DNA of 64,000 nucleotides, taken from the NCBI GenBank assembly GCA_002104905.1, contig MCFE01000002.1, positions 186,001-250,000 of the forward strand, in the 5' to 3' direction. The notes below the pieces were generated by a model, which was not told the origin of the DNA, did no database searches, and was given only the letters and a program-made list of their open reading frames with translations. Origin of the DNA: Basidiobolus meristosporus CBS 931.73. Its lineage: Eukaryota; Fungi; Basidiobolomycota. Made by a program: the position numbers and the translations under genes. Below, one piece after another: positions 1 through 26,600 of this stretch; position 1 is the first letter of the stretch; each line of letters starts with the position of its first letter.

Positions 1-64
1 CTTCTGTTGACCTCTTGGCTATTTGCCCACCCTTCATTATTGAACTCAGTGGCTTCACAGATCT

Positions 65-2450: not shown

Positions 2451-3482
2451 TCAATGTGGGGCACTCTTGTGAGGGGTATTGGCGTAGGTTGGACTGATGT
2501 GTGCCGGTGTGCTGAAGTTGCAAAGGATGGTAAGGAATCCAGCAAAGAGTGCTGGCGCAATCTAGACACTGTTGCTTGAGGTCTGTATTCTTCCTCTTGA
2601 AGCTCACCTTCTGATTCCTCAAGGTATTCACTTACCCTCTGTGTGATACTTTGGAACTGTTGTCTGGATGAGTCCTATGTATTTTGCTCTTGGAAGCCAC
2701 CCATCACTACTAATATATCACGTAATACATTAGTCATTTAAGGCAAAAACTCATTCCAAATCTATTTGGTTCTCAGTGATGAGGCACAAACAGACATGTC
2801 TGGCCTGTACTGTGCAAATTGCACGCAAAATTGTTCCCATGCAGCTCCCTCATCAAATCCCCTCACTCTCAGCTCATTCTTAATTTCAATACCTGTCTTG
2901 TTATATATCTTCTCACATACATCCACTGGCATCTTAATGTAGAACTTGTGCTACAGCTTTCTACTCAGGTTCTTCCATCTCTGTTAACTCTCTGAGGTAT
3001 TTAGTTCTTCTAGGTCAATGAGTAGTGCCCAAATATCTGTATGAAGGCTCATCATAGACACTTGGGCCATGCTAAAATCATTTGGCAGGAACTCAAACAG
3101 ATCCAACATTGACTTCCCTGATCTGGACCATGCTTTTGAGCTGGGGATGGGTTTTGTCTGGGTTGTACTAAAGATGAGTTGAGACTTGGTATAGGGACCA
3201 TAGTGATAGATTTGGATACTAGTATAGTATTGTATTGGCATCAACCTGGTCTTATATGAAATATATATGAAAACTAATGTGATTGTTGAGTTTTCCATAA
3301 ATTATGCTTGATGCATCTAGGATTGCATTGACATGGATTGGATCCCATCAATTGTAGATTTCCTATTTGATTACAGACTTGGGAGTAAAGCATCAGTAAA
3401 AATACTAAGTTGTTGTTTGAGGATGATTTTTGTGACATAATGATGGGATACATGTCAATTGATGGAGATTTAATCATGATGC

Positions 3483-4445
3483 ATGGAAAATCAGATAAAT
3501 ATAGTAGATTGCACCAAATTGAATCAATACGCCTCAGCCCAATCACCTACCAACTTTAATATGACTTACTCATCTGAATGGTCTTTTCTCATCAATCCCA
3601 TCACTACCACTGAATTTCCCATTGACACACTAAAGGAGATCTATACCAAGTACTATGGACCATCTACCCCAATCTACTCAAGGAGATCCCTTGTTAAGCT
3701 TCTCTGCTATTACAAGATATATTGCCCCACAAGGTTTCATCCCACCATCCATGGCAACAAAAGTCCTAAAAGCTTTCATTCGCAGCTGACAGCAATGGAG
3801 AACCACCTTGCAGAGGGTATGAATGACTTAGAGCAAGCTTGGAATACTTGGTTCAGAAGCTCCAATAAACTTCCATATCCCAGAGTGTTCAGCAACAGGT
3901 TTCATATAAGGAGTATCTTGGATACCCTCCCAGTCAGGATCAACAGACCTTCTAGAGGACAGAGGCACTTTTATTCTGTCAAGTACAAGGCACACTGTGT
4001 GAAGTTTCAAGTACTGTCTGACATTGAGGGTAACATCATCTGGTTTAGTGGACTATTTGCTGGGAGTAGGCATGACAAAGTACTCTGGGTAGAGAATCAT
4101 CCAGAATTCAGTAGAGGGGAGAAATTTATGGCAGTCTTAGCTTACATAGGAGAGGGTTATTGCAGATTAGGATGTATTACAGCATATAGGAAGCCAATAA
4201 ATGGTGTGCTTAGCAGGAAGCCGAAGCTCTAAAATGAGATATTTAATCATTTCAGAGTCAGGGTAGAGCATACATTTGGATATCTGAAGAGATTCCCCAT
4301 ATTGGCTGGTAAATACAGAGGAAAGTCACATACAGGAGAAAACAGCACAATAGGTAAAATAGTTAAAATACTTATTAATGCACAGTATATTCATACAAGA
4401 AGACATCCACTGAGAGAAATATGTCTGGAGCACTATGAAGAGTAA
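3483..4445 (+). pseudogene. DDE_Tnp_4 family (PIF/Harbinger/ISL2EU-like) transposase, disrupted
   Basis: Motifs ILDTLPVRINRP, HFYSVKYKAHCVKFQV, GSRHD, AVLAYIG (catalytic D apparently mutated to V). Past the TAA at 4230-4232 the same frame continues RVRVEHTFGYLKRF to TAA 4443-4445. Confidence 0.8.
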
Positions 4446-4519
4446 ATAAAGCAAGGAAAGCACTATTCTGAGAAACATAAGTAAGATTAAATAAAATTAC
4501 CAGTAACTATATCCTATTA

Positions 4520-4611
4520 CTGGCATTATAGTAGAAGTTATAGTGCCAGATGGTGCTGTAGAGTGCCAGATCAATCCAGCACTATACACAGGCTGGCACT
4601 ATGTGGCACTA
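4520..4611. repeat. Array of ~6 copies of a 9-bp motif (CTGGCACTA / TAGTGCCAG) in both orientations; candidate subterminal repeats of a DNA transposon
   Basis: ctggcatta 4520, tagtgccag 4541, gagtgccag 4561, ccagcacta 4576, ctggcacta 4593, gtggcacta 4603; lies immediately upstream of the CACTA transposase. Confidence 0.55.
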
Positions 4612-4649
4612 TCCAATGGAACAAGTCTACTGAGTCAGGGGAGTTTGTG

Positions 4650-6045
4650 ATGCCTTTGGGCTCTCCTCAGCCTCCTGAATATGGCATGCAGAGTGATAGC
4701 TCTGACAAAGAAGGTTCACCAATTGATTATGAGCCTATCTCCCCTAACAACAGTACCATGTATGAGCCCAGTCAAATCCCATATGCAATAAGAAAACACC
4801 CATTGAAACAAATGCCAATGATACTTTATGGAGCAAAGTGAGCCCAGAAATTCATCTACTGGTGAGTGATGTAATGTTATGGCTAGAGAAGTGGTGCGTT
4901 TCCACTAATATCAGTAATAGGGCTTTGAGGATTTATAACTACTTCTTGCCAAAATCATTGGGGATGCAACTTACCATTTACATGGTACAAGTGGACAACC
5001 CTCATGCAGCTGGTAACATATGATCCAGAGACTGTCCTGATTCCAGCATGTGTTAACAGTTGCATGGCATTTGCATCTAAAAATGCTACCATTGCAACAT
5101 GTCCAAATTGTCAGCAATCCACCGCCATTGAGGGAAAGTATTGTTCACACTCCAGATATATTCCGGTAATACCCCATCTGAGGAAGCTGATGCAGTCCAA
5201 CAAATATTGCAAAGCTATAGAGTATGGCACTCAGTATTAGTCAAGCGCAAACATATATGATATATTTGATGGCAAATATTACAAACAGCTAAGAAGCAAG
5301 GGCTACTTTGAAGGTATGTATGACCATGGGTTTGCCTTATCACTTGATGGACTCTCATTAAACAAGTACTCTACCAGCAAATCCTGCTGGCCACTGATTC
5401 TCATCAATCTGATTCTGCCACCCATCTTATGGTTTTAGAGCAATAATCTGATTGTAGTCTCACTGGTATCTGGGCCTAAATCACCATCCAACATGTATAA
5501 CTACAGGTATCCATTGCTGGATGAATTTTGTATGCTTTCCAGCAGGATAACAGTCAATGGTTGTCATGTAAAGGCACATATTTTATCTGCATTGGTGATG
5601 TCCTAGCCATAAGCAAGAGAGCAGGTTTATCCAGGCACAATGGACAGTATTGCTGTCAAATGTGTGAGATCCAGGTGATTTACTCCACAACTCACACGCA
5701 TTATTTTTGCCAAAACACCAGCATTAAGAACATCATCTTTCCACAGAGAGAACATACAGAAGTCAGCATGCAATTGCAGCAAAGTTGGCAAGCTATAAGC
5801 CATTGGCTAGAATATGGAATTAATTGGAAACCAGAGATACTTAAGATAGAGGGTATCTGTTGGAGTAAAGCTTTCCACTGGGAGTAATGCATTTTCTTTT
5901 CAGCAATATCCCCATACTAATGAACAAGTTGTACATGAGGTATTTGAAGCTAAATGAGCCCTTTCAGATACCAGAGAAATTTGAAAGAATTGGCAAGATA
6001 TTACAGAGTATCCACTACCCTAATTACTACTCATGGGCTGCAATC
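4650..6045 (+). pseudogene. CACTA/EnSpm (Transposase_21-like) transposase, 5' part, degenerate
   Basis: ACVNSCMAF...CPNC, then across stops YDIFDGKYY, FALSLDG, CWPLILINLILPP, GPKSPSN...PLLDE, GDVLAISKRAGLSRHNGQYCCQMC; ends at the CAATC target site of the copia insertion. Confidence 0.8.
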
Positions 6046-6394
6046 TGTTGTAAAAATTTGTAATTCCACCTAAATATTCACCTAACTTAGTCACTTAGAT
6101 CATAACCCTCAAATCCTAGAGAATACTGACCAAATTCCTTGTTGGGATTTACTTAGATTATTTTCACCAAAATACCAGGTACCCAGAACATAAAAATTCT
6201 CAAAGTTGCCCAAACAGCCCCAAACTTTGCACACATGTTCTTGGGACCTTTCTTAGCCTATTCTATGTGGTTGCAATGCCAAGACCAGGTAAAAGTATAA
6301 ATACTACTTTTACATTAAATTAATCATTAAGTGAAAACCACATAATCTACTTGTTCTCCAAATCATTTCCAATATCTCCAAGACTCTTACAACA
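6046..6394 (+). repeat. copia-1 5' LTR (349 bp)
   Basis: TGTTG...CAACA terminal inverted repeat; about 18 mismatches to 17161-17509 by manual alignment, mostly transitions. Confidence 0.95.
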
Positions 6395-6406
6395 GGTTAT
6401 GAGCCC
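6395..6406 (+). promoter_or_regulatory. Primer-binding site complementary to the anticodon arm of initiator tRNA-Met (half-tRNA priming)
   Basis: GGTTATGAGCCC directly after the LTR is the reverse complement of GGGCUCAUAACC in fungal tRNAiMet; the same site recurs inverted at 22414-22425. Confidence 0.9.
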
Positions 6407-8126
6407 CAAGCTGTCACTCTCTGCAATATCTACTACTGCTATTACTGGAATTTTTCCCTATGCTGAAAAGTTGGATGGCTCTAACTACCAAGTGTGGAAG
6501 GTGAAGATGAAGATGCTGCTACAAAAAAGAGGCCTTTAGGATATTGTCATGGGAGAAGAATGCCCTCCTAAAAACGTGGGAGAGGAAGCCTTGAAGTACC
6601 AGAAGAAAGAACAAAGTGCCTTTAACTGCATTTGCCTTAATGTTAAAGACAAATTGCTAATTCAATGCTCAAGAGCAAAAACGGCAAAGAATGCCTGGAA
6701 GGCATTAGAAGACACCTACCAGTCATGTTCAGCTGCCAAGAAAATGTATCTGAGACAAAAATTCTTGACTACAAAGATGCTGCCAGGAGAAGAAATGAAA
6801 AATCTATTTAGCAGAATTACCCTGCTGGTAGTTGAGATGGAATCTGTGGGCGTACCAACTACTGATGAGGATGTGATAGTTACCATCCTGAATAGCCTGA
6901 CAGACAAGTTTCAGGGCCTTGTATCAGCCCTAGAGTCCAGAATTGAAGATTTGACCTTAAATTACGTATATGGAAGGCTCCTGGATGAAGAATGAAGAAA
7001 ATCAAGCGCCAATAAGAAGTAAGAAGAAAATGCTTTAATAAGCAATGATAACCAACAAAGGAGGTACCAAAGACCCTACAAAGGCAACAGCAACCTATTT
7101 TGCAACTACTGCAAAAGGAAAGGACACACATCAGACTGGTGTCTCAAAAAGAAAGATAATCAGCAAAAGAAGCCTGAATATGGAAATGCTACAACAACTT
7201 AAGATAAACTATTCATATATTCACTAAATATGACCACAAACAAGGATTCTCAGTCGTGGTGTATTGGCTCTGGAGCATCTCAACACTTTACACACCAAAA
7301 AGAACTTTTTACTCAATATCAAGAAATTCCAATTAAGAAGGTTTTCATGGGTGATGATAGAACACTTGATGCAGTGGGAGAAGGAACTATCCAAGTAAAC
7401 CTAAGAAGCAGTGAAGGAAGCCATACACTGACCTTTAAAGAAGTACTCTATGTACCAGAAATAGCCAAGAACCTACTCTCTGTAAGCAAGGTCACAGCAG
7501 AAGGACTAAGTTTCAGTTTTGACAATTTTGGATGCAGGATCACTGATCAAAATGGTGCTCATATTGCTTTGGGCATCAGAGATCAGAATCTATACAAGTT
7601 GACTTATATTCCATCATATTTGGAAGCCAATATAAGTAACTTAAATGAAGAAACACCAATGCTTTGGCACAGGAGATTTGGGCACATCAATTTTGATTAT
7701 TTGCGCAAAATGATCAAAGATCAGCTAATTTCTGGAGTAAAAATTGATCACCCAACTAATTTGAAGCACTGTGAAGCCTGCATATATGGGAAACAAGCCA
7801 GACAACTGTTCAAGAGCTCTGGGTTAATCAAAATTAAGCAAAAATTAGATCTATTCACTCAGATCTGTGTGGACCTATGCAAAATTTATCCTTAGGCGGG
7901 ATGAAGTATTTAATCACTTTTATTGATGATTATACAAGATACACATGGGTCTACTTCATGAAGAGAAAGGAAGAAGCTCTGTCTAAGTTCAGGGAGCTTA
8001 AAGCCATGGCGGAGAGAGAAACTGGTGAAAAAATCAAGAACATACGCTCTGACAGTGGTGAAGAATATACCTTAAAGCTCTTCATCCACTTCTGCAAAAT
8101 TCATGGGATAAGGCAAGAGACTACTG
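6399..8126 (+). pseudogene. copia-1 gag-pol, 5' part (gag, Zn knuckle, protease, GAG-pre-integrase, integrase N-half)
   Basis: LDGSNYQVWKVKMKMLL, AKNAWKALEDTY, CNYCKRKGHTSDWC, WCIGSGASQH (D>G), LWHRRFGH, CEACIYGKQ, FIDDYTR, RSDSGEEY; stops and frameshifts present. Confidence 0.93.
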
Positions 8127-8514
8127 TGTGAGTACTCAATGTAGTACCCACTCTTTGCCCAAGAGTTCTCCCAAGAGTTCCCTCCAGAGTCCTACCCAAA
8201 GTCCTCCAGTACCCTCCCTATGATTCCCCCACGCGTCCTCCCCTCCTATCCCTGCCCTTATCTAGTTAGAACACTTACCATAACAGGAAGGTGCTCACAC
8301 CCCTATTTTATAACACATTGTCTATTGTCTAAGCCCCCCCCAAGTGATATATATATCTACCCAATTGAACCAGGAAGAACAACAAGATTTGGACGAAATA
8401 AACAGAAGTCTTTATTACCTTGCTACCTTCTATTGGAAGCTATTCTGAACCAAGTGGTACTGACTTGACCTACAAGCTCTCCCACTCACCAAGTACAGTC
8501 AGTAATAACCCACA
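8127..8514 (+). repeat. gypsy 5' LTR (388 bp)
   Basis: TGTG...CACA ends; internal TATATATAT and AATAAA; near-identical copy 6387 bp downstream. Confidence 0.97.
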
Positions 8515-8518
8515 TATT

Positions 8519-8530
8519 TGGTGCCGTCTC
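8519..8530 (+). promoter_or_regulatory. gypsy PBS, probably tRNA-His
   Basis: TGGTGCCGTCTC, 4 nt after the LTR; resembles the complement of a tRNA-His 3' end (yeast tRNA-His would give TGGTGCCATCTC). Confidence 0.6.
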
Positions 8531-8555
8531 TGCGGAAATAAGCACAAGTGAGGTA

Positions 8556-9428
8556 ATGACTACTACAATCAAACTAAAAACATACAAGGGAAAGAGAGAG
8601 AAAGCCCTTGAGTGGTTTGATAAGTTTGAGAGAGTTGCGGTTGATGCAGGATGGGACAATGATAAGAAAGTAAGAGAGTTTGCAAGACATATGGAAGGGT
8701 CAGCATGGTGATGGCATTATGGGTTGGAAGACGCAGTCAAAGACGACTGGGATGCACTAGAAGAAGCCTACAAGACACGCTTTCTATATGCCAAAGGATA
8801 CCACTACAAAGCCCTTCTACTGTCCTTGCAGAAGAAAAGCAGTGAAAGCTATGAAGCCTACACTGAACTGTTTCTCCAACAAGTTCGATGTCTCCCGAAG
8901 GACAAAATTGCCAAACAACAGCTCATGAGGTATTACATCATGGGCTTAGATGACAAAATAAGACGTAGGGCATCCAAAGTACAACAGGGATGTAAAACGT
9001 TGCAAGAGTTGGTCGAACAAGTACAAGGGGTCATCTTGCTATGGGGGCTACCCTATAGTGATACAAATGATCGAAGGACAGGGATCCCCCGTAAGAAAGG
9101 AAAAATTGCCTCCCCAAAAGACCGTGAGTTAGAGGAATTACGGCGAAAGGTCCAAGAACTCTTGATCAACAATGTCCAAGAAGTCCGCAAAGAAGGTGAT
9201 AAACTCTGGGAAGCTGTCGTAGATCTAAAGGCCCAGGTTCAAGTCCTGACCCAACAGATGGAACGACCGCAACGACAGTATCCGTGTTATGTGTGTGGAG
9301 AAGTAGGTCACCGGGCCCATGAATGTGAAAAACGGTACGGAAGAGAAGCCGTACCGGACACAAAAGAGAAGAAGGCATCAAAAGACAGAGTCCCTTGCCA
9401 GGAGTCCAATGGGACTCAGTCAATCTAA
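8556..9428 (+). pseudogene. gypsy gag with CCHC zinc knuckle (one in-frame TGA)
   Basis: ATG 8556 MTTTIKLKTYKG...EWFDKFERVAVDAGWD; TGA at 8709-8711; CYVCGEVGHRAHEC. Confidence 0.9.
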
Positions 9429-12400
9429 GCCCTCCGGTCAGGACAATTGAAGTGCGGAAGAAGAAGCGTCGACATGATGCTTCTAGAGAGGAGGCAAAGG
9501 AACCTGTAGTAGAGGTTCCGTCAAAAGGAAAGAGCGCGGAATTAGGTGAAGAAGTACGGAATGAACCTTGGGAAGAAGTGTTAAAGCAAACGAAGAACGC
9601 TAGCACGTCTTCCCATGGCCTATTCCCCATAATGAAGGTACTAGAGCAAACCAAGGCAACCCTCCCAATAACCAATTTACTGGGACTGGCCCCGGCTCTA
9701 GTCAAGGAACTGATAGAGGGATTGAAGGAGATAACGACCCTCCATGTCAACCAGACGGTCCTGCAAAAACCAAATAAAGGTACATACGTAAAGGTACGTA
9801 TAGAGAATAAGGAGATTCTTGCCCTTATCGACACAGGATCCTCTACATTGATCATGTCAGAGTCATTAGTGAAACGTCTAAAACTAAATATAGTCCCCAA
9901 TGACACCATTCAAGTATGGCTAGCAAATGACTAACTGGATACAACGGTAGGTGTGGTGCCTAATTGCCCCATTTGGCTAGGCAACTTGATAATATGCCAA
10001 GATGTCGTTGTCCTACCCGTTGCAGCCAACAACTTACTCATTGGCGAGAGTTGGTTTATCCAACATAAGATGGATATACTTTACAGTGCATCTGAACTCA
10101 GGTGGGATACCAAGAGTATCCCACTGATTCATATCACCAATGAGAGCAAGGCGCATAGCAACAGTGTGACGATTGAAGAGGTGAAACCGTTGCAGTCTCC
10201 AATCATCACACAAAAGGTGATAAAAATACCACCTGCCAGTGAGACGGTGATCTCATTAGAAACACCAATAGCTTATTCAACAAGCGGAAGAATGATAACC
10301 GCAGCAAAAGCATCCAAGCAACTGGAAGGAATCTTGATCCCTAAAGTATGGATACCACCAAAATTTGAAACGCAAAGCCTGAAATGCTTAGTGGTTAACA
10401 ACGGGCAACACACGGTGACATTGCCTAGAGGAGTGCCATTGTTAAACTTAGAGGAAGTCGATGGAAACAACCAAGGACCACCTCCAAACGAAGAACCAGA
10501 AGAAGAACTCCCCAAACTAGATGTGGAACCGGTCTACCGCCTACGTTACAAGACAAATTCCTAGAAGGAATACGTCCGCTGGCCCAAGTATTCTCTAAGA
10601 ACCAAGTAATTGGTCATATACCTGGGGTATATCACCAAATCCACCTTGCCAACAAATACCCCATCAAGCAAAAAGCCTATAGGAATTCGAAAATTGACAC
10701 AGACTGTATCAAAGAGACGATTGAAACTTTATTAAAAGACAACATCATTACAGAGAGCCAGTCTCTGTGGGCCTCCCCCGTAGTGATAGTCCCAAAGAAA
10801 GACGGAAAGCGACGCTTTTGCATTGACTACCGGAAATTGAACGCTGTCACCCGGAAGGACATGTATCCGCTACCGCAAATAGATGACCTCTTGGACAGAT
10901 TAATCGGAGCTAAATATTTTAGCTCTCTTGACTTAATCTCCGGGTATTGGCAAGTAGAAGTAGCCCCGGAAGATCAACCCAAAACCGCTTTTATAACATT
11001 GTTTGGATTATACAAATGGAACCGACTACCCTTTGGCTTGTGCAATGCCCCCGCTACGTTCCAAAGGATGATTGACAAGGTGCTAGGAAATCTACAATGG
11101 GAATGCGCCCTTGTGTATCTGGACGACATCACAATATATTCCCCCAATGTAGAAGAACATATACATGACGTGCAATGTATCCTGACATCCCTCCTCAAGA
11201 ACCAACTCAAACTACATCCCAAGAAGTGCCATTTCCTGTATACAAAATTGTTGTTCCTGGGCCACGAGATCTTGGCAGATGGAATATACCCATCTACGTC
11301 ACTCCTGAAAGCCGTTCAAAATGCACCTGCACCAAAGGACATTAATGCAGTGTTGGGATTCCTAGGATTAGCCGGCTACTATTGCCGCTTTGTAAAAAAC
11401 TTTGCAGCAATAGCAGCCCCCCTATACAAATTGACGCAAAAGGGCCAGTGTTTTGTATGGTTGGAGCCTCAAAAGAGAGCATTTGATCAGCTGAAACATT
11501 CCCTGATGTCACCGCCAGTGTTACAATTTCCCAATTGGGATGCGAGATTTTTTATTAACTGTGATGGAAGCCTCACCGGTATAGGCGCCGTACTGGGACA
11601 ATACCACCAACCCGGCAAATTCCACCCAATTGGTTACGTGAGCCGTTCGCTAAACAAACACAAACGCCACTACCCCGTTACCAAGATAGAATGTCTGGCT
11701 GTTGTTTATTCAATTAAACAATTCCATACATACATACATGGTTGCCAATTCACGATAGTAACGGACCACAGCGCACTGGTCTGGCTGATGAAAACTAAAG
11801 ACTTTACCGGCCAACTAGCACGTTGGGCCCTACAACTACAGCAATACAACTTTGAAATAATTCACCGCGCTGGCAAGAAACACCAGGACGCAGACTTCCT
11901 CAGTCGCTACCCCGTTTGCCAAATACGTGTCATTGATGAGTACAAGGACGTAATCTGCTTTAAAAAGAAAGGAAGGTATCCCAAACACGTCGTTACAAAC
12001 AAACAGAAGAGAGAATTTTGAAGGAAATGGTGTCAGTACAAAGTACAAGAAAATCGACTATGGTTCCTCCAAGGACAGTCCAGAGCCAAGGTACCCCCAC
12101 TAGCAGCCCGTGAAGAAATCATACAAGAAAGACATATGTCATTAGGACACGCTAACCCCCTAACGACATATAAGATGTTAAGAAAAACGTTTTATTGGCA
12201 AAAAATGATGACCGACGTTACAAATACATTACAAAGATGCACCACTTGCAAAAGATTCAACCGGAGTCAGAAGATAGGGACAACCGCACCAATACCGGTT
12301 GACCTTCCCTTCCACCAAGTAGGGATTGACTTTGTTGGCCCCTTTATGAAAATAAAGAAAGGAGAACAATACATAATAATTGCTACCAATTATTTCTCAA

Positions 12401-13170
12401 AGTGGGTAGAAGCCCAAGCCGTCTGCAATAAAGATCAGAAGACAACCGCCCAATTCATTCTAGAACACCTCATCTGCCGACACGGATATCCTCAGATACT
12501 CCTGTCCGACAATGGTGGTTCCTTCCTGAACAACACCATGGCCCACCTGTGCAAAATGATGGGCGTGAAACAAGTCTTCACGGCCGCGTATCACCCTCAG
12601 ACTAACGGATTAACTGAGAGGATGAACCAGACGTGTTGCTGCATACTGGAGAAGCTTCACTGGGAACTTCCCCAATCATGGGCCGAGCTGCTCCCACTGA
12701 CACTCCTAGCAATGCGCACCACACCAAATAAAACGACAGGTTTCTCCCCATATGAAATCCTATATGGACAAAGACCCAAGTGGCGGGAGGAAGCTGGATT
12801 GACAATGGAAGGTGTCCCCCTGACAACACATAACAACTATATAGAAAGGTTGATACACCGTATCGCCCACCTATACATAAAAGTATTCGAAAATGTTGAC
12901 AAGCACCTTCCCCCTCCACCCAAAAATGAGAAACTAACAAGACAAAAGTGGAAACCAGGCGATAAGGTGTGGTACGACCAAACTGTTGCAGGCCTCAAGT
13001 TCCGCCCACAATTTACACCCCAATGGATTGGCCCATGCACCGCTATCAGTTTGGACCACGGACCAAAGTACACCATCACCCTGAATAATAAGACAATCAG
13101 CAACGTAGCGCCAGCCCATCTGAAACTGTTTCATGATGATCCACCGATCATCACTGAGACCAAAGTGTGA
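9395..13170 (+). pseudogene. gypsy pol (protease, RT, RNase H, integrase; no chromodomain), disrupted
   Basis: [35 protein letters not shown]; CDGS...ECLAVV...TDHSAL; HHCC zinc finger; D-D(35)E; W.GP C-terminal motif. Stops at 9932 and 12019; frameshift near 10525. Confidence 0.96.
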
Positions 13171-13299
13171 TTAAACAATTATCAGGACAAGGATAGAGGA
13201 AGACACAGGATACATTTGAAGTTTATTAGAGGAGATTTTAGTCGATATAGGTACAAATAATATGCGCAAGGGAGTTTGCCCAAAGGGGAGAACAAAAGA

Positions 13300-14469
13300 A
13301 TGCATATGGAAAGCGCCAAAGGAAACAGTTCACCCAAAACTGGCGATACCCCTCCCACTAGCAAGAACCAAGATGATATCAAAAACGAAACCAACCTGCA
13401 AGTGTTAAGAGATATGGTACAAGCGTTACATACGACAAGAGCCACCTATGAAGAGTTGTTTGCCGGAGCAGTCATGCTAATACGAGACACAATCAGAGAG
13501 GGACGAGACAAGTTACCCACACCAATACAAAGCATGGAGATACTACCCGAGAAGACCGTGTACCACCTAAGAGGAGGTTCCTTGATCATTAAGGAGAAGG
13601 ATGCCACGCTGATTCCCATATCCATACTGGACACAGTCAGACAGAAGACACAAGGAATCAACTGTCGCGCCCTCACAAGACCTTGAGAGCCCCCCTGTTT
13701 TGTTGCATACTTGCCATTAATAGGTACCACGGTTGTTGAGGTATACACAGACCTGGTACGAGCTGCAAGAGCACCAGAAGTAGAACTCCCAATCAAAGGA
13801 CTCCTCCGAGAAATTTGCGAACATCTTGAACCACATTTCCAAGTAGGAACCATCTTAGAGAAGATACGCAAACGGATTAAATACACCGGCCAGTTAACCC
13901 ATGCAATCCACCGAGTTGCTGTGTTACAACTATTACAGTGGTTTACCATAGGACAACTCAGGAATCAGTACAAAGTCCAACTCCAAGAAGCCAAAGAAAC
14001 CGCCGCGGATTCTGTAGAAACCATGAGGCAAGTACAAAAGCGCCTCAATTGCGCCACAGTTTCTACGGAAGAACTACAATACGTCTCGGAAGAAGCAAAA
14101 ACTTGTTATCAACAACGGGTGACTGCCGACCAAGTGTACACCCTCTTCAAAAGGTCCCCCGCCGTCATATTGAACACAAAAAGGACAAGCCCCAATAACG
14201 TTTGCAAGATAAAGAAGCAAGACTTTATTGTGCTATTGCACCTTTTCTTGTTCTCCGACCCTCCCAAGGAACTTACCCAGAACCCTATGGTTTGCCAACT
14301 ATTTGGCTCTGTGGAAAACATCCCTCAAGCAACACAGGCCGCACCCCACTCTGCCGCCGAATGGTATCAGGTACTCGCCCACAATCCCCTTGCAAGTGAC
14401 AACCAGCAATGGTACTACGGTGACTCCCCATGCTCCGTAAACAAAATTGATCCTGGAGAAGCGAGTTAG
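13300..14469 (+). pseudogene. gypsy ORF3, unknown function (~389 codons, one in-frame TGA)
   Basis: ORFs 13276-13686 and 13711-14469 are in one frame, separated only by TGA 13684-13686; first ATG at 13300; ends 44 bp before the 3' LTR. Confidence 0.8.
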
Positions 14470-14513
14470 TCAAAGAACTTTGAGGATGAAGCTCCCACTT
14501 AACCCCCGGGATA

Positions 14514-14901
14514 TGTGAGTACTCAATGTAGTACCCACTCTTTGCCCAAGAGTTCTCCCAACAGTTCCCTCCAGAGTCCTACCCAAAGTCCTCCAGTACC
14601 CTCCCTATGATTCCCCCACGCGTCCTCCCCTCCTATCCCTGCCCTTATCTAGTTAGAACACTTACCATAACAGGAAGGTGCTCACACCCCTATTTTATAA
14701 CACATTGTCTATTGTCTAAGCCCCCCCCAAGTGATATATATATCTACCCAATTGAACCAGGAAGAACAACAAGATTTGGACGAAATAAACAGAAGTCTTT
14801 ATTACCTTGCTACCTTCTATTGGAAGCTATTCTGAACCAAGTGGTACTGACTTGACCTACAAGCTCTCCCACTCACCAAGTACAGTCAGTAATAACCCAC
14901 A
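14514..14901 (+). repeat. gypsy 3' LTR (388 bp)
   Basis: Matches 8127-8514 except one base; followed by TSD TACTG. Confidence 0.97.
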
Positions 14902-14906
14902 TACTG

Positions 14907-17149
14907 TACCATACTCCCTACAGCAAAATGGAGTAGCAGAACAAGCTAACAGATCAATAATTGATATGGCAAGATCTATGATCCATTATCAAAAATTATC
15001 ATATGATTTTTGGGCAGAATCAGTTGCCACTGCTGTATACCTTAAAAATAGGAGTTATAACAGAATACTTTGTGATTCTACTCCATTTGAAGCATGGCAT
15101 GGATACAGAGCAAGTGCAGAACATCTAAGAACATTTGGGTGTACAGCATATGCCAAAAAACTGGCCGGAAATCAGGCAAAATCTGAGCCAAAAAGTGTAA
15201 AATGCATATTTTTGGGCTACTGCAATGAGAGTAAGGCATACAGACTCTACAATACCAAAGCAAAGAAGCTGATCAAGTCCAGGGATGTGTTGTTTGATGA
15301 AAATTCAAGATTTTAACAAGAAATGACATCAGATGATGACAAAAATTTGATCTCAAGTCCACCAATTGTCAGGATTGAATCAGAGCAAAACAATGAAAAT
15401 TTTTTCACTCCAGTGGACTCTACAACCATGGTTCAGCCAGAATCAGTGCCCAGTAATATCCCAGAAGTGATCATTCCAGTATCAAATGCCGGGAGATCCA
15501 ATCAGACAAGAAATAGCCCAAATTACTATATCAATGAAGGTACAAACTTAGCCTATGCCTATTCAGTCCATATTGATGAACCCCAGACTGTAAAAGAGAC
15601 CCTAAATAGCCCTCAGGCAAAGTTTTGGAGATCTGCAATGACTGAGGAATATCAGGCTTTGATGGAAAATCAAACTTGGGACTTAGTCAAATTACCAATC
15701 AACCAGAAATCAATTGGATGCAGATGGGTCCTCAAGACAAAATACAAGGCTGATGATTCAATTGAAAGATACAAAGCAAGACTTGTAGCCAAAGGATACT
15801 CTCAAACAAAAGGACTTGACTATACTGAGACCTTTGCACCAGTAGCCAAGTTTAATTCCATCAGATTAATATTGGCTATTGCAGCCAAATATAAGTTTTT
15901 TATTCATCAAATGGATGTAAAAACTGCATTTTTGAATGGAGAACTTGATGAGGACATGTATATGAGCCGGCCTGATGGGCTTATCAACCAAGATACTCCC
16001 CATTTGGTCTGCAAGCTTAAAAAGTCAATATATGGTCTCAAACAATCACCAAGAGCCTGGAATTGCAAGATAGATTCTTATTTGGACTCTTAGAGTTTCA
16101 AAAGGAGTAATGCTGACTATAGTATATATTATAGGCCAGATAGAGCAAATCCAGTTCTATTAGCTCTATATGTGGATGATCTTATTATAGCCACCAATAA
16201 CCTAGCAACATTGGAAGAGACTAAATCCAGCCTATCTAAGGAGTTCAAGATGTCCAGTCTAGGAGAACTCAGTTACTACTTGGGGATTAAGTTCTCCACA
16301 GACAGAAGTACCCAGACTATCACCCTAAGCCAATCCAAGTATATTCAAGATATACTAAAGAAGTACCAAATGGAAGACTGTAAACCGGCAGCTACCCCAA
16401 TGGAGACAAACTTTAACTTGGTCAAAACTCAACCAAATCAAGAGAGCTTGGTGCCATCTGAAAGCCCTGACTTTCCTTATCAGTTCATGGTTGGCAGTCT
16501 GATGTATATCATGCTTGGAACACGTCCAGATATCTCATATTCAGTGGGAGTTGTCAGCCAACATAATCAGAATTATGGATCTGATCATATTGCAGCAGTT
16601 AAGTGGATTTTTAGATACCTAAAAGGAACTGCTGATATCTGCTTAAGATACACTTATAAGGATTCAGAACAGGATCTTGTGGGATACTCTGATGCTGATT
16701 GGGGACAAAATTTAGAAGACAGAAGATCCACCACAGGATACACCTTACTTTACTGTAAAGGAGCAACTTCATAGAACTCAAGAAAGCAACCAACCTTAGC
16801 ACTTTCCACCACAGAGGCAGAGTATATGGCAGCCGGTGAAGCTACAAAAGAAGCAATGTGGTTAAGAAAGCTTTTTACAGGTTTAGGCCTATGTCAAAAA
16901 ACACCTATTACTTTATTTCAAGATAATTAAAGATATATACAATTAGGTAGAAATCCAACTTTTCATGCCAGAACTAAGCACATAGATAGTAGATATCATT
17001 TCATATGTGAAGCTATAGAGAATAACTTAGTTAGCTTAGTTTACTGTCCTACAGATGAAATGATTGCAGACATATTTACCAAACCATTAGCTAGAGACAA
17101 GTTTGAGTATCTTAGGTCAAAATTAGGACTAGTCAGTATGAACCTTTAG
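14907..17149 (+). pseudogene. copia-1 pol, 3' part (integrase C-half, RT, RNase H)
   Basis: QQNGVAEQANR, KCIFLGY, RYKARLVAKGYSQ, QMDVKTAFLNG, LYGLKQSPR-like IYGLKQSPRAW, LYVDD, GYSDADW, EAEY, RTKHID, ADIFTKPL; several stops. Confidence 0.95.
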
Positions 17150-17160
17150 CTGAGTGGGAG

Positions 17161-17509
17161 TGTTGTAAAAATTTGTAATTCCACCTAAATATTCACCTAA
17201 CTTAGTCACTTAGATCATTACCCTCAAATCCTAGAGAATACTGACCAAATTCCTTGTTGGGATTTACTTGGATTATTTTCACCAAAATACCAGGTACCCA
17301 GAATATAAAAATTCTCAAAGTTGTCCAAACAGCCCCAAACTTTGCACACATGCTCTTGGGACCTTCCTTAGCCCAATCTATGTGTTTGTAGTGCCAAGAC
17401 CAGGTAAAAGTATAAGCACTACTCTTACATTCAATAAATCATTAGGTGAAAACCACATAATCTACTTGTTCTCCAAATCACTTCCAATATCTCCAAGACT
17501 CTTACAACA
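17161..17509 (+). repeat. copia-1 3' LTR (349 bp), preceded by PPT GAGTGGGAG (17152-17160)
   Basis: Aligned to the 5' LTR; followed by TSD CAATC. Confidence 0.95.
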
Positions 17510-17514
17510 CAATC

Positions 17515-18071
17515 AATATTTATATGCATATGCAACAATACAAATGCAAAGACTGGATGAACTAGATATGTGTTATTCAAGTGGCATTTTGAAGCCATTC
17601 CTACCAAGTGTGCATTGCAAGCATTGGGAGTCATATGTGGACATTGTAGGAATATTTATCCAGAAGCAGATCACCAATGCCAACTTGATGCATCTACAGC
17701 TATTGTGCAAGGAGTTTGTAATGGGATTTGAGCGGCTATACTGCTAATATTAAGCTGAACACATAGATCTCTGCTGCTACTGTATCCATTTTCTACTCCA
17801 TCTTGCATGGTGTGTGGAGAATATTTGGTCCTGCTTCACCTTTTGGGAGTTTCCTATGGAGCTGATGTGTGGGGAGATAGGAATACAAGTCAAGTTGCAG
17901 GTACTACCATATCCCAATCTCATCAAGAATATTACCTTCAAGTCCATCATGGATGTGATGAGTTGGCACATGGAGGGCAGCCAGAAAGAGTTGAAAAACA
18001 CTGAGGACAAGTGTTCACATGGAGACACCTATGCCTATGGCATTAAGATGCTAAGCAGCCCCAATGCATGA
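17515..18071 (+). pseudogene. CACTA/EnSpm transposase, 3' continuation after the copia insertion
   Basis: KHWESYVDIVGIFIQKQIT...EFVMGFERLY, IHFLLHLAWCVEN, FTFWEFPMELMCG, PYPNL: the H-L-H / W-FPMER / PY-NL pattern of CACTA transposase C-halves. Confidence 0.75.
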
Positions 18072-18896
18072 GTAATCAGTTAAGTAATGCAAAGTTGGGT
18101 TGGGTGCAACAAGCAACTAACTTTTATTAGGAAAACTCTACCAAGGTATGCCGGATTTCTCTTGGTCACAAGCTAACTTCTAGATCATTCAATACATAAT
18201 TCACACAGACAAGAGCCAGAGTGCACCTATAAAGGGGACTAGAATCCAGCAGGGAGAAGGAATATATTGGTTAAATACCATAAAGTTCCTTGCAAATGTT
18301 TGGGAGGTATTCATGGAAGAAGTGGTGGCAACCAAGCATATGTTTGCCAGATGTATATGTTACCAGCAATACAAGGTATATGGCAACTTTGCAAGCATCA
18401 CACTAAAAAGCCATAAAGTTGGGGTGATGGAAGTATGTCAATTGTGGCAGGTGTGCACATTTGTAGAGGTTAGTAAGCAGGAGGCCATATTTTTTTTGGA
18501 TTTCAACTATATATGTAATACCCAAGGTAGTAGTGGGTAAGCAAATAAAGAGGGGTGACTTTACAGTGGAATATATGAATTGCGCAAGGGGAGGTAGAAA
18601 AAGGAAACATCACTTGGTAAACTGGTGTGGTAGCATTATACAGAACTAGCTGTAGGCCACCATACTGCTATTATAATGACATCAGAGGCTTGCAAAGAGG
18701 CCATCAAACAATGTCAAGTTTTTGGCCATATAACACAATTGAATATACTGGCAAGTTAGATCCACTCCAATAATTGTAAAGTGCACTAAGACTGCAACAA
18801 TGCCATGCCACCCTTAGCAAAACACTGTGCAAACACTGTTATATTTTATCAACTTTATTTGGCTGTAAAATTAGCAAAGTGCTGTTGTGATCCCTG

Positions 18897-19716
18897 ACAG
18901 GATCTTGACATCTGATCTTGATTGGATCCACCCATGGGACCATACTATCTTTCATAGGGTACTGTAAAGGAGCAATTTCATGGAATTCAAGAAAGCAACC
19001 ATCCATAGCACTTTCTACCACAGAGGTGGAGTATATGGCAGCCTGTGAAGCTACAAAAGAAGCAATGTGGTTAAGCAAACTTTTTGAAGATTTAGGCTTA
19101 TATAAAAAAATGCCTATTACTTTATTTCAGGATATTCAAAGATGTATACAATTAGATAGAAATCCAGCTTTTTATGCTAGAACTAAGCACATAGATATTA
19201 CATATCATTTCATATATGAAGCTATAGTGAATTACTTAGTCAACTTAGCTTGCTGTCCTATAGATGATATGATTGCAGTCATATTCACCAAACCATTAGC
19301 TAGAGAGAAGTTCAAATATTTAAGTCAAGATTAGGACTGGTCAGTATGAACATTTAGATGAGTGGGGGTGTTGTAAAAATTTGTTATTCCACCTGAATAT
19401 TCACCTAGCTTAGTCACTTAGATCAATACCTCCAAATCCTAGAGAATACTGATCAAGATCCTTGTTGGGATTTGCTTAGATTATTTTCACCAAAATATCA
19501 GGTATCCCCAACATGAAAATTCTCAAAGTTGTTCAAAAGCCCCACACATTGCACACATGCTCTTGGGACCTTCCTAAACCTACTCTATGTGCTTGTTATG
19601 CCAAGCCCATGTAAATGTATAAATATTACCTTTGCAGTCAATAAATCATTAAGTAAAAAACACAAAATCTGCTTGTTCTCCCAATCACTTCCAGTATATC
19701 CAAGACTATTACAACA
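18897..19716 (+). mobile_element. 5'-truncated copy of the same copia family (RNase H end, PPT, LTR 19369-19716)
   Basis: SWNSRKQPSIALSTTEVEY, RTKHID, FTKPLAR; PPT GAGTGGGGG; 348-bp TGTTG...CAACA LTR homologous to the copia-1 LTRs. Confidence 0.9.
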
Positions 19717-21340
19717 TCTTCTACAGTCTGGGTCTCATCAATATGGACTGAATAGGCATAGGCTAAGTGTGTACCCTCATTGATGCAGTAATTTGGGCCA
19801 ATCTTGGTCCAGTTGGATCTCCTGGTTTAGGATACTGGAATGATCACTTCAGGGATATTCATGAGCACTGATTCAGGCTGAACCATAGTTGCAGAGCTCT
19901 CTGGAGTTAAATAGCTTGTATTGTTTTGCTCTGCCTCAATCCTGACTATTTGTGGACTTGAGATCAGATTTTTGTCATCAATTGATGACATTTTTTGTGA
20001 AAATTTTGCATATTCATCTAGCAACACATCCCTGACTTGCTCAGCTTCTTTTCTTTAGTATTGTAGAGTCTGCATGTCTTACTCTTATTGTAGTAGCCCA
20101 ACAATGTGGATTTACATTTTTTGGGCTCAGATTTTGACAGATTTCCAGGTAGTTTCTTTGCATATGCTGTACAACCAAATATCCTTTGATGTTCTGCACT
20201 TGGTCTGTATCCATACCTTTCTTCAAGTGGAGTAGAGTCTCAAAGTATTCTGTTATAACTCCTATTTTTAAGGTATACAGCTGTGTCAACAGATTCCACC
20301 TAAAAATCATAGAATGGCTTTTTCATCAGGCATCATTGATTATGACACATCAATTATTGATCTGTTTGCGCATTCTGCTACTACATTTTGCTGTGGGGAG
20401 TATGGTACAGTAGTCATATGCTTTATCCAATGAATTTGCAGCAGTGGATGAAGAGCTTTGAGGTGTATTCTCCACCATTGTCAGAGTGTGTTTTCTTGAT
20501 TTTTTCACCAGCTCCTCTCTCTGCCATTGCATAAGCTCCATGGATTTAGACAGAGCTGCTTTCTTTCTCTCCTTGAAGTAGACCTACATGTATCTAGTAT
20601 AATCATCAATAAAGTGATTGAACACTTCATCCCACCTAAGGATAAATTTTGCATAGGTGCACATAGATCTGAGTGAATTAGATCTAATTTTTCTTAGTTT
20701 TGATTAACCTACAGGTCTTGAACCATTGTCTGGCTTTTTCCCATCAATGCAAGTAATTAAAATTGATGTGTCCAAATCTCCTGTGCCATAGCATTGGTGC
20801 TTCTTCAATTAAGTTACATATATTGGCTTCTAGATATGATGGGATATATGTCAGCCTGTACAGATTCTGATCACTGATACCCAAAGCAATATGGGCTCTG
20901 TTTTGATTGGTGATCCTGCATCCAGAATTGTTAATGCTGAAACGGAGTCCTTCTGCTGTGACCTTGCTAACAGATAGTAGGTTCTTGGCTATTTCTTGTA
21001 CATAGAGTACTTCTTTAAAGGACAGTGTATGGCTTCCTTCACTGCTTCCAAGGTTTACTTGGATAGCTCCTTCTCCCTGCTGCATCAAGTATTCTATTGT
21101 TACCTATGAAAACATTCTTAATTGGAATTTCTTGATATTGAGTAAAAGTTCCTTTTGGTCTGTAAAGTGCTGAGATACTCCAGAGTCAATATACCACATA
21201 TGAGAAGCCTTGTTTATGACCATATTTAATGCAGATATGATTAGTCTATCTTCTGTTATTGCATTGTTTCCATATTCAGGCCTTTCCTGCTCACTATCTC
21301 TCTTTTTGGGGCATTAGTTGGATGTGTGTCCTTTCCTTTG

Positions 21341-22080
21341 GCAGTAGTTGCAGAACTGGTTGCTATTGCCTTTAAAGGGCTATGGGTATCTCCTTTGTTG
21401 GTTATTATTGCTTATTAAAGCATTTTCTTTTTCCTTCTTGTTGGTGCTTGACTTTGGTTAATTTTTCATCCAGCACCCTTGTATATATGTACTTGAGGTC
21501 AAATCTTCAGCTCTGAACTCTAGGGCAGATAAAAGGCCCTGAAACTTATCTGTCAGGCTATTCAAGATGGTAACTATCACATCCTCATCAGCAGTTGGTA
21601 TGCCACAGATTCCATCTCATCTACTAGCAGGGTAGTTCTCTTAACTAGATTTTTCATTTGTTCTCCTGGCAGCATCTTTGTAGTATATTTGTCTCAGATA
21701 CAATTTCTTACAGTAGTTTCAAAGCAGGTTGCTATTACCTTTAAAGGGTCATGGATACCTCCTTTGCTGGTCATCATCTCTTATTAAAGCATTTTCTTCT
21801 TCCTTCTTATTGGTGCTTGATTTTCTTGATTCTTCATCCAGGACCCTTCCATGTACATAATTTAAGGTCAAATCTTCAGTTCTGGACTCTAGAGCTGATA
21901 CAAGGCCCAGAAACCTGTCTGTCAGGCTATTCAGGATGATAACTATCACAACCTCATCAGTAGTTGGTATGCCCACTGATTCCATCTCATCCACCGGCAG
22001 GGTAATTCTGATAATTAGATTTTTCATTTGTACTCCTGGCAGCATCTCTGTAGTAAGGGACATTTGTCTAAGATACATTC
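21341..22080 (-). repeat. Diverged tandem duplication (~370 bp) of a gag segment
   Basis: ~21341-21708 and ~21709-22080 both encode the YLRQ...VSALESR...RRYP segment; the two copies differ at many positions. Confidence 0.85.
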
Positions 22081-22595
22081 TCTTAGCAGCTGAACATGGC
22101 TGGTAGTTGTCTTCTAATGCCTTCCATGCAATCTTTGTGGTTTTTGCTTGAACATTGAATTAGCAATTTGTCTTTAACATTGAGGCAAATGCAGTTAAAG
22201 GCACTTTATTCTTTCTTTTGGTACATGCAAGGCCACTGCTCCCGCATCTTTAGGAGGGCATTCTTCTCCTATGACAATATCTCAAAGCCCTCTTTCTTGT
22301 AGCAGCATCTTCATCTTCACCTTCCACACTTGATAGTTAGATACATCCAACTTTTCAGCAGAGGGAAAGTTTCAGTAATAGCAGTAGTAGACATTGCAGA
22401 GAGTAACAGCTTGGGGCTCATAACCTGTTGTAAGAGTCTTGGAGATATTGGAAGTGATTTGGAGAACAAGTAGATCATGTGGTTGTCACTTAATGATTTA
22501 TTGAATGTTAAAGTAGTATTTGTACTTTTACATGGCCTTGGCCTAACAAACATGTAGAATAGGCTTAGGAAGGTCACAAGAACATGTGTGCTGTG

Positions 22596-22610
22596 TAACC
22601 CTAACCCTAA
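22596..22610 (+). repeat. Telomeric-type repeat patch TAACCCTAACCCTAA inside a copia LTR
   Basis: Replaces ~30 bp that are present in the other three LTR copies. Confidence 0.7.
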
Positions 22611-22759
22611 GATTTTCATGTGCTGGGTACCTGATATTTTGGTGAAAATATTCTAAGTAAATCCCAACAAGGAATTTGGCCAGTATTCTCCAAGATTTGT
22701 TGGTAATGATCTAAGTGACCAAGGTGAATACTTAGGTGGAATTCCGAATTTTTGCAACA

Positions 22760-23670: not shown

Positions 23671-26600
23671 ATGACGGACAAGTTATATACTTCTAGTCCA
23701 TTCTCACCTACTATTCCTGGCTCTCCATCCACCCCGGCCACCCCCTCAGGCCCACATCAGCTAGGTAGTAGGGTGATTGTTCAAAATAAGCCGGGTGTCA
23801 TCAGATTCATCGGAAACACTGCCTTTGCCAAAGGGAAGTGGATTGGTGTTGAGTTGGATGAGCCACTCGGTAAGAACGACGGTATCGTAGGGGGAAAGGT
23901 TTACTTTAAATGTCGACCGAAGCATGGTATGTTCGTAAGAGCTTCTCAACTGAAGTCTCTGAACGGGACTCCGGCTCGCCGACTTTTTTCTGACTCCGCC
24001 ACTCCTGAAACCTCTCGTACACCCGCCTCCCCCTCTACAAACCCTCGCCTTGCACGGTCACTTACACACAACGGACAGTCCAGTGCACAGGGAACCCCCA
24101 GCAGACTCCCTCACCCTTCGAAAATGGGCACCACTCCAACCCCGTCAAGGTCCATGTCTCAGAGGTCGGCCAGCGGTAGTGGAAGATTTACCACACCTCG
24201 ACCGCGTCGTAATATCCCCAGTTTCGATGCAAGCTCAGAATCTGCTGCCTCGACGATAGAAGGCTCCACTCTATCGCATGCTCCCGAAGAGACAGTAACG
24301 GAGGATGAACAGTCTTCTGAGCCCACTGTAGACGACGAACATAACAGTACCGAGAGCGACGAAACACCACCGACACCCACACATGAGCGAACCGGTAAGC
24401 CCGGCCAGGTTGTGCCAATCAAGGACTACGAGGAGCTTCGACTGAAATTGAAAGTGTTGGAAAACAAGCGACTGGAGGATAGAGAGAAATGGAAGGGGTT
24501 TGAAAAAGTACGCAACGAGGCGGAACAATTCATGACCATCCGGTCCAAGCTGGTTGTCAAGCTGAGCGAGTTGCAGCAGGAGCTGAGAGAAAATAGAAAG
24601 GCGTTGAAGCAGGCATTACTGGACCGAGAGAATTTTGAAAACAAGTACACGGATGCGTCCGAATCCTTAGAGTTGATGACTTTGGACAAGGAAATGGCGG
24701 AGGAAAAGGTTGAAAACCTCACGCAAGAGGTGGCTCTTTTAAAGGAAAGAATCGAGGAAATCACCATTGAGCTGGATGTATTCAAAAAGGCTGGAGAAGC
24801 AGATTTTGAGGGGGAGCAGCGATCCGAGATCGAGATAGTGCAGATTGAGCGGCAAAATGAGCGTTTAAAGGAAGCACTGGTTCGGCTTAGAGATGTTACT
24901 GTTGAGCAAGAAACAGAGCTTAATCGGAAGATCAAAGCCCTGGAGAAGGAGGTGTATTCGCTACAAGATCTTGAGCATACGACGAAGAAACTTCGGGAGC
25001 AATTGGAGCAGTCGGAGAATCAGGTTGAGGATTTGAAACTTCGCCTGGACGATGCCATCGGCTCTGAAGATATCATTGAACAACTGTCAGAAAAGAACCT
25101 AGCTCTCAATGAAAAGATCGAGGAGATGGCCCTTGTCATCGAAGACTTGGAGGCTCTGAAAGAACTCAACGACGAGCTGGAGGAAAACCATTGCGAAACT
25201 GAAAAGCAGCTCTTGGTCGAGATTGACATCAAGGATACTCATATCCGTGAATTGAAAAAGAGCTTCGAATCGACTGAGGAGACCATTGGAGATTACGAAA
25301 ATACAATTAACCAGTTCAGACAGCTGGTGAACAATCTACAAGGCGACTTGGAACAGTTGAAGCAAAAGGAGGCTGTACAAACAACCGAGTCTAAAGACTT
25401 GAATGTTCACTCGCAAGCCATGCTGAATTTGAATCTACAGCTTCAATCGACAGCAATGAAAGCCCAAGCGAAGCAGATCGATTTGGATTTGAGGAAACTC
25501 GAGGCTGACCAAGCTACCGAACTGCTCTCGTACATCAAATCGTACATGCCCGAATCGTTCTTCATCAACGAGTACGACTCTCTGAGATGTCTTTTCTTGA
25601 TGAAGAGGCTCTCGTTCAAAACCGAGCTCATCAACAAACACATAAGTCAGAATCATCATGTTATCGAGGGGCTTCCCAACGAAACGTCGGAGGAGCTGAT
25701 GTCCGTTTGTGAGATGCGTGAAAGACTTGCCTGGTTCTCGGATTTGGCTGCTAGGTTTGTAGTGCACATGAACAACTGTAGCCCCAAGGAATTCATCAAG
25801 CTCGGGCCTATCTACCACGAGCTTGTAGGGGCCGAGAGAAGACTCAACAACTTCACGGATCTATTGAAGAAGGAGGAGCTCAACGAATCCCAATGCCTTG
25901 CCGACCTCCACCGCGCAGTCTCTCAGTTGGAGCATCTCTCCGAAAGCCATTTATCCAGCCCCAGCGCGTTCAACTCGGAAATGTTCCACTCCCTGGTTCG
26001 CTCAGTAGAGTACAGTACCGACCATGTTATCTCTATACTCAGCCACATCGAAACCTTCTTCCAGTCCCCAGAGTTCTATGACGATTTTGGCGGATTTGAT
26101 AGTGTGAACAAGGAAACCGTTCAGGAAGAACTCCTGGAGCCCCTCTCCAACCTGGTTCACAAAACGAAAACCGTCAAGGTGGTGTCCAAGAAACTTCTAC
26201 GGTACTTTGACGGTTTGACCGAGCAATCGTTGAGCCTGAAGCCGGAGCTCATTGAGCAGTACAGAAAATTGTGGCGGGATACCCGTCTTCTGGTACAATT
26301 CTCTAGCGAGGCTTGGAAGAGAATGTACGCCTACGCATTGGACAAAAAGGACTCGAAAACCCTCACTCAGCTTTCATCGCTGCAACAGATCCTATTCAAA
26401 ACGACCGAGGAAGTGCTCAAGATCGGGGAGGTCACCCCTTGGCACTCAGCAAACAAAATGGTCGAAGGGATCTCACAGGAGCTAAATAGGTACTTCGATA
26501 TGGTTCATGATAACGCCAATCTTCACAAAGGTATAGTAGCTATTGTTGGGTTGCTGGTGATGATCCTGACTAACATTCTGTTTAGTTGAAGCCACCCCCG

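Follow-up and report, generated by a model that had tools for sequence, protein, structure and literature searches.

An Orphan, Sense-Oriented Additional ORF Downstream of pol in a Ty3/gypsy Retrotransposon of Basidiobolus meristosporus

Introduction

Extra genes of LTR retrotransposons record the gain of new functions, as retroviruses and env illustrate. One recognized class of such genes is formed by the additional ORFs (aORFs) that lie in the interval from pol to the 3' LTR, and the sense-oriented ones of plants are often termed env-like (PMC7264820, PMC8365987). The sense aORFs of the plant Athila and Tat lineages (eORFs) have no known function and some of them contain a coiled coil (PMC7264820, PMC4408406). 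Antisense aORFs were described in plants and in fungal Boty elements, where the gene is named brtn (PMC7264820, PMC8365987). Bdelloid rotifers possess a range of non-env ORF3s, including types with coiled-coil features only and no env hallmarks; their conservation and transcription were shown, and as a rule the ORF3 of an LTR element forms a transcription unit of its own that is expressed by splicing (PMC5408684). In errantiviruses and other Ty3/gypsy elements, the same position is occupied by env genes (PMC13524379). Few extra genes are known from fungi, and the single example encountered in the part of the literature covered is antisense.

Here, we describe an ORF, designated ORF3, in a Ty3/gypsy element of Basidiobolus meristosporus CBS 931.73. 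The window analyzed is the whole stretch of 64,000 nucleotides (64 kb) of the contig MCFE01000002.1. ORF3 is an orphan example of the known kind, namely the additional ORFs of LTR retrotransposons. Like the rotifer non-env ORF3s, including the "CC" type (PMC5408684), it is sense-oriented, apparently family-specific and located after pol within the LTRs. However, the hosts differ, no sequence similarity to the rotifer proteins was found in the protein-library searches, and the fungal ORF3 is known from the sequence of one broken copy. ORF3 shares its orientation and its location between pol and the 3' LTR with the Athila and Tat aORFs; the plant ORFs often contain transmembrane (TM) segments or recognizable domains such as PMD and Tr28, whereas ORF3 contains none of these and belongs to a different lineage of elements. 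The brtn gene of Boty-like elements from Botrytis and Sclerotinia (Zhao et al. 2011, cited in PMC7264820 and PMC8365987) is likewise an extra gene that fungal Ty3/gypsy elements carry between pol and the 3' LTR and that has no assigned function; it is set apart by its orientation. Identification of ORF3 as a brtn-type antisense aORF was rejected, since ORF3 lies on the sense strand. In view of brtn, although it is antisense, the statement of the first-pass annotation that fungal Ty3/gypsy elements normally encode only gag and pol is too strong.

The position of ORF3 is also that of the errantivirus env genes, and the named relatives of the integrase come mostly from animals; however, ORF3 lacks a signal peptide, a TM anchor and a cleavage site and matches no env family. 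The chromodomain tail of chromoviruses is likewise found downstream of the integrase core, in the usual place of the targeting module of fungal elements, but ORF3 is separated from the integrase by a non-coding spacer, and no Chromo match was obtained for either of the two. In the part of the literature covered, no sense-oriented non-env ORF3 was found described for a fungal Ty3/gypsy element.

Results

Structure of the Element and Its Insertion

Self-BLAST of the window revealed direct repeats at 8127-8516 and 14514-14903 (99.7% identity, one mismatch). Reading the repeat ends (TG..CA) set the LTRs proper at 8127-8514 and 14514-14901, i.e., two LTRs of 388 bp with TG..CA ends and a one-base difference between them. 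The element, both LTRs included, is 6,775 bp long (8127-14901). The order of its Pfam domains (gag, protease, RT, RNase H, integrase) is that of Ty3/gypsy (Metaviridae-type) elements, and the direct TG..CA LTRs, the target-site duplication and a putative primer-binding site, which begins with TGG 4 nt past the 5' LTR, are further features of this group. The features found are as follows:

6046-17509, + strand: Ty1/copia element hosting the Ty3/gypsy insertion (LTRs; RVT_2, gag_pre-integrs and Pol_BBD domains)
8122-8126, no strand: left target-site duplication, TACTG (read from sequence)
8127-8514, + strand: 5' LTR, 388 bp, TG..CA (self-BLAST, 99.7%; ends read)
8519-8536, + strand: putative primer-binding site, starting with TGG, 4 nt after the LTR (assigned by reading the sequence)
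8556-13170, + strand: gag-pro-pol, broken, with a minimum of three in-frame stops and two frame changes (Pfam, break count)
8742-8951, + strand: Retrotrans_gag (Pfam)
9282-9326, + strand: zinc knuckle (Pfam)
9788-9928, + strand: aspartyl protease (Pfam)
10789-11271, + strand: RT (Pfam)
11458-11847, + strand: RNase H (Pfam)
12142-12264, + strand: integrase H2C2 (Pfam)
12307-12597, + strand: integrase core (Pfam)
13171-13299, + strand: purine-rich, C-poor spacer from the integrase stop to the ORF3 ATG (composition, codon-model scores)
13300-14469, + strand: ORF3, a 389-codon sense frame of a family without match, with one in-frame stop (stop counts, codon usage, searches)
14470-14513, + strand: 3' untranslated stretch with short purine runs, putative polypurine tract region (assigned by reading the sequence)
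14514-14901, + strand: 3' LTR, 388 bp (self-BLAST; ends read)
14902-14906, no strand: right target-site duplication, TACTG (read from sequence)

The TACTG duplication is present on both flanks of the LTR-bounded unit, which means that the whole unit, including ORF3, was inserted in a single event. Together with the single-base difference between the LTRs, this bears out the earlier proposal that ORF3 moved with the element. No second copy of ORF3 was found in the 64-kb window when both pieces of the ORF were used as queries.

The element is part of a transposon nest (6046-22759), being located within the Ty1/copia element, which has LTRs at 6046-6394 and 17161-17509 with 94.8% identity to each other. 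Another copia copy, in inverted orientation, was found at approximately 18960-22759 and is 84-87% identical to the copia element at 6046-17509.

ORF3 as an Open Reading Frame

The integrase frame terminates at 13168-13170, and one further stop in the same frame is located within the following 129-bp spacer. ORF3, which is in the same frame as the integrase, starts with an ATG at 13300 that has A at position -3. A single stop interrupts it before the terminal stop at 14467-14469, and 44 bp separate its end from the 3' LTR. The remaining two sense frames of the region 13171-14513 contain 20 and 17 stops. Dinucleotide-preserving shuffles of ORF3 contained 19.2 stops on average and at least 6, and none of the 5000 shuffles had one stop or fewer. 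No inner boundaries of a nested insertion (repeats) were found around ORF3. Thus, the frame at 13300-14469 inside the LTR pair is confirmed as real and sense-oriented, and so is the third sense ORF in the env position, interrupted once, that the first-pass annotation had reported. It has the position expected of a sense aORF, i.e., beyond gag-pol and within the LTR pair, and is longer than expected by chance.

Codon Usage and Composition

For the codon statistics of ORF3, counts were summed over the two separate pieces on either side of the stop. In the larger C-terminal piece, the GC content of the codon positions decreased in the order GC1 > GC3 > GC2, as in gag and RT, and the N-terminal piece (GC1/GC2/GC3 of 0.48/0.41/0.51) showed the pattern of the integrase. 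The frequency of A in the third position was 0.34-0.35 in ORF3 versus 0.14-0.29 in four host genes, and the AT skew of ORF3 (+0.19 to +0.37) was similar to that of gag-pol. The RSCU values of ORF3 correlated with those of gag-pol at 0.65 and with those of the four host genes at 0.21; when ORF3 was read in the wrong frames, the correlation with gag-pol fell to 0.35-0.40.

A codon model was trained on the gag-pol pieces, with the coding frame set against the shifted frames. In the proposed frame, the two ORF3 pieces scored +0.16 and +0.23 bits per codon and the shifted frames were negative; the element's own genes, left out singly, scored +0.11 to +0.25 bits per codon with the same model. The spacer at 13171-13299 scored negatively in all three frames, and its composition (11% C, two-thirds purine) was sharply unlike that of both flanks. 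The avoidance of stops, the codon match to gag-pol, the non-coding spacer and the location of the integrase end show that ORF3 is a separate, element-adapted coding frame and neither a chance frame nor a tail of pol. For a presence of ORF3 in most copies of the family, the gag-pol-like codon usage is indirect evidence at most.

Two antisense ATG-ORFs were also observed, one beneath gag and protease (9166-9909, - strand, 247 aa) and one beneath ORF3 (13446-13949, - strand, 167 aa). The length of the former was reached in 3 of 1000 dinucleotide shuffles of the interior, and that of the latter in 0.8% of codon-order shuffles and 7% of dinucleotide shuffles. Neither had a Pfam match. They may represent the antisense shadow that coding frames commonly cast, or an antisense gene of the brtn type.

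Integrase and Its Relatives

No match to the chromodomain (PF00385) was found in the integrase or ORF3 with Pfam at E <= 1, in agreement with the first reading of the integrase, so the element does not carry the chromodomain at the integrase C-terminus that defines chromoviruses. Relatives of the integrase that bear a chromodomain were 25-31% identical to it, versus 36-42% for those without a chromodomain. The closest relatives (37-42% identity) were metagenome and Logan fragments; elements of sponges, cnidarians, arthropods and fish came next. Beyond the last aligned block, the integrase continues for 44 residues; the corresponding distances in the two closest relatives are 48 and 59 residues, and the ends of both are true stops inside contigs.

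The named relatives of the integrase (12136-13170) were all non-fungal and came from sponges, cnidarians, spiders, ticks, fish, a plant and Dictyostelium. This may indicate a lineage that is unusual for a fungus, or it may be an effect of the length filter of the search, which leaves out full-length fungal polyproteins and can bias the list.

Downstream of the integrase in its closest relative, a short, unrelated sense ORF starts 458 bp past the integrase and is cut by the contig end, and no sense ORF was found after the integrase in a 16-kb relative (30% identity). Relatives of the RT in metagenomes were 37-54% identical, on contigs too short to span the position of ORF3. No ORF3-like sequence was detected in the twelve fetched relative loci with both pieces as queries.

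Homology Searches with ORF3

The two pieces flanking the stop were queried separately. With both pieces, Pfam (E <= 1) gave only sub-threshold coiled-coil-type noise, and no homologue was found among PDB sequences or IMG/VR viral contigs. The C-terminal piece had no homologue in a library of 5.8 billion proteins, searched within a length window covering intact ORF3, in 1.84 billion representative proteins searched with phmmer without a length limit, or in JGI metagenome contigs. The N-terminal piece had no homologue in prokaryotic genomes. The absence of a known family noted in the first-pass annotation therefore held in the Pfam and PDB searches with both pieces and in the large protein-library searches with the C-terminal piece. 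A second gag- or capsid-like gene was considered and rejected: no Pfam gag family was matched, and tblastn against the element's own gag gave only E = 8.

Predicted Properties of the ORF3 Protein

ORF3 contains no signal peptide or hydrophobic N-terminus, no TM helix and no R-x-K/R-R (furin) site; its highest 19-residue Kyte-Doolittle mean is 1.32, under the level of a membrane helix. The N-terminus is polar and looks disordered. Two sequons, a pI that is near neutral to mildly basic and one basic cluster were found. With signal peptide, membrane anchor and protease cleavage site all absent, and with no above-threshold Pfam or PDB match of ORF3 to a viral fusion glycoprotein, the description of ORF3 as not env-like was upheld.

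A heptad pattern fits two windows of ORF3. Single-sequence AlphaFold modeling of the two pieces led to models with poor confidence (pLDDT of 37.6 and 45.0), which were all-helical except for a small strand region and included one long helix. A Foldseek search of the low-confidence model against the PDB gave a best E of 0.59, which is meaningless at such confidence. A coiled-coil middle, as had been claimed, is plausible, but the claim is weakly supported.

State of This Copy

Breaks in gag-pol were counted along the minimum-cost path that leads, with switching among the three frames, from the gag ATG at 8556 to the integrase stop; at least five were needed, namely three in-frame stops and two frame changes. 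The density of breaks in ORF3, with its one in-frame stop, is similar. Judged from these reading frames, both ORF3 and gag-pol are inactive in this copy. Both frame changes in gag-pol run in the same direction, and either or both could be programmed gag/pro/pol shifts of a three-frame layout rather than lesions.

One LTR mismatch per 388 bp implies about 8 substitutions in the 6-kb interior since insertion, which is too few for four stops to have arisen by chance. The stops may be explained by a copy that was already defective at insertion or by decay concentrated at CpG sites, which the LTRs almost lack; the observed/expected CpG ratio is 0.18 in the LTRs versus 0.64 in the interior. Since the copy has several disabling lesions, its near-identical LTRs show the co-mobility of ORF3 and not its function.

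Host Neighborhood

The observed/expected CpG ratio was 0.04-0.13 in the copia copies, 0.09 in the region 1-6045 and 0.79-0.85 in host gene regions; the CpG-depleted regions scored were 1-6045, 6046-8126 and 14902-22759. The depleted older transposons showed an excess of TpG/CpA. A Harbinger-like ORF (DDE_Tnp_4) was found at 3483-4232, within the region 1-6045. The pattern of depletion fits methylation-linked decay of transposons in the Basidiobolus host. The suggestion of the first-pass annotation that the host appears to methylate its transposons is in keeping with this strong CpG depletion of older elements in an early-diverging fungus.

A dynactin ORF (23671-26589) has its match in a Basidiobolus ranarum protein (88% identity). 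The corresponding locus of B. ranarum is collinear with the window, with a nucleotide identity of approximately 76%, so the window belongs to a different species of the genus. The B. ranarum contig JASJQH010000032.1 stops 2.5 kb upstream of dynactin and is uninformative on the Ty3/gypsy element. Its end (751-1449) is 71-74% identical to the copia element of the window, so transposons are located upstream of dynactin in both species. Elsewhere in the window, the A-rich region 49689-52676 contains sense ORFs that are long, overlap one another and have a low-complexity composition, dominated first by K, P, S and E and then by Q, N, G, M and P. They gave no match in Pfam, and the region probably encodes a disordered host protein and not a transposon.

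Discussion

Origin of ORF3

The reading that we prefer, at about even confidence, is that ORF3 is a genuine sense-oriented additional ORF carried by the retrotransposon and adapted to it, whose soluble, largely alpha-helical non-env product may act as a helical adaptor. Its main competitor is a transduced passenger, i.e., a fragment of a host gene or of a foreign one that was acquired by this copy, or by a small sub-lineage, and plays no part in the life cycle of the element. Only one copy of ORF3 is known, nothing similar occurs in the fetched relatives of the element, and plant LTR elements do show single-copy transductions (PMC7264820). However, the phmmer search with the C-terminal piece was blank against 1.84 billion proteins that included the annotated proteome of B. 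ranarum, and ORF3 fits neatly into the interval between pol and the LTR, with its own ATG and no insertion scars. Moreover, its codon usage, third-position A and strand skew are those of gag-pol and not of the host genes, which indicates long residence in the retroelement and argues against recent capture from the host. A passenger origin is therefore considered unlikely.

The other explanations are less probable still. That ORF3 is a decayed C-terminal extension of Pol, formerly continuous with the integrase and cut off by later stops, is suggested by the frame shared by the two and by the further in-frame stops of the same copy. It is very unlikely given that the distance from the core to the integrase end is like that in the closest relatives, whose stops are genuine, that the 129-bp spacer is non-coding in every frame and differs sharply in composition from its flanks, and that ORF3 begins with an ATG in a good context. 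We consider it highly improbable that ORF3 derives from an envelope gene by degeneration, with loss of the signal peptide and the membrane anchor. The env position, the coiled-coil-like heptads and a sub-threshold Pfam match to the main domain of herpesvirus glycoprotein H (E 0.011, 14.9 bits, cut-off 20) point in this direction. However, in 389 codons open but for one stop, lost hydrophobic segments should remain visible, and none were seen: hydropathy peaks at 1.32, the N-terminus is not hydrophobic, the furin site is missing, the sequons number two, and all env families remained under threshold in Pfam and PDB. Finally, the absence of a homologue, of a confident fold and of a second copy would also be expected of a chance open frame in A-rich untranslated sequence that is no gene; this can hardly be credited when none of 5000 dinucleotide shuffles was comparably open and when both the composition by codon position and the scores of the codon model depend on the frame and agree with those of the element's genes.

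Possible Mode of Action and Expression

On the preferred reading, ORF3 has been resident long enough to adopt the codon usage and the A-rich strand bias of the element. Its product, with a polar N-terminus, heptad-patterned helices and one basic cluster, would most likely self-associate via its helices and serve as an adaptor, acting intracellularly on RNA or particles of the element itself. A transcript distinct from the gag-pol message would serve for its expression. Donor-like GT motifs just 5' of the gag ATG and several AG sites in the spacer are candidate splice signals, but such motifs are frequent by chance. Fungal introns are generally short, and a multi-kilobase splice of the env type would be unusual in a fungus, so this is not an obvious route of expression for ORF3; an internal transcription start is equally possible as a spliced message.

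Anti-silencing, targeting, trafficking and RNA binding, as suggested in the first-pass annotation, are hypothetical roles of ORF3. A bolder proposal is that ORF3 is the first representative of a new family of accessory proteins of retroelements that is conserved across a non-chromodomain Ty3/gypsy lineage in zoopagomycetes and either replaces the chromodomain in the choice of insertion sites or blunts methylation-linked silencing. We regard this as quite unlikely.

Significance

The present evidence consists of one dead copy with an orphan ORF, and it is a lead and not a result. A conserved sense-oriented gene in an early-diverging fungus, if true, would add a protein family to the short list of extra genes of fungal LTR retrotransposons, and it might show how an element with no chromodomain manages in a host in which transposons are subject to heavy decay.
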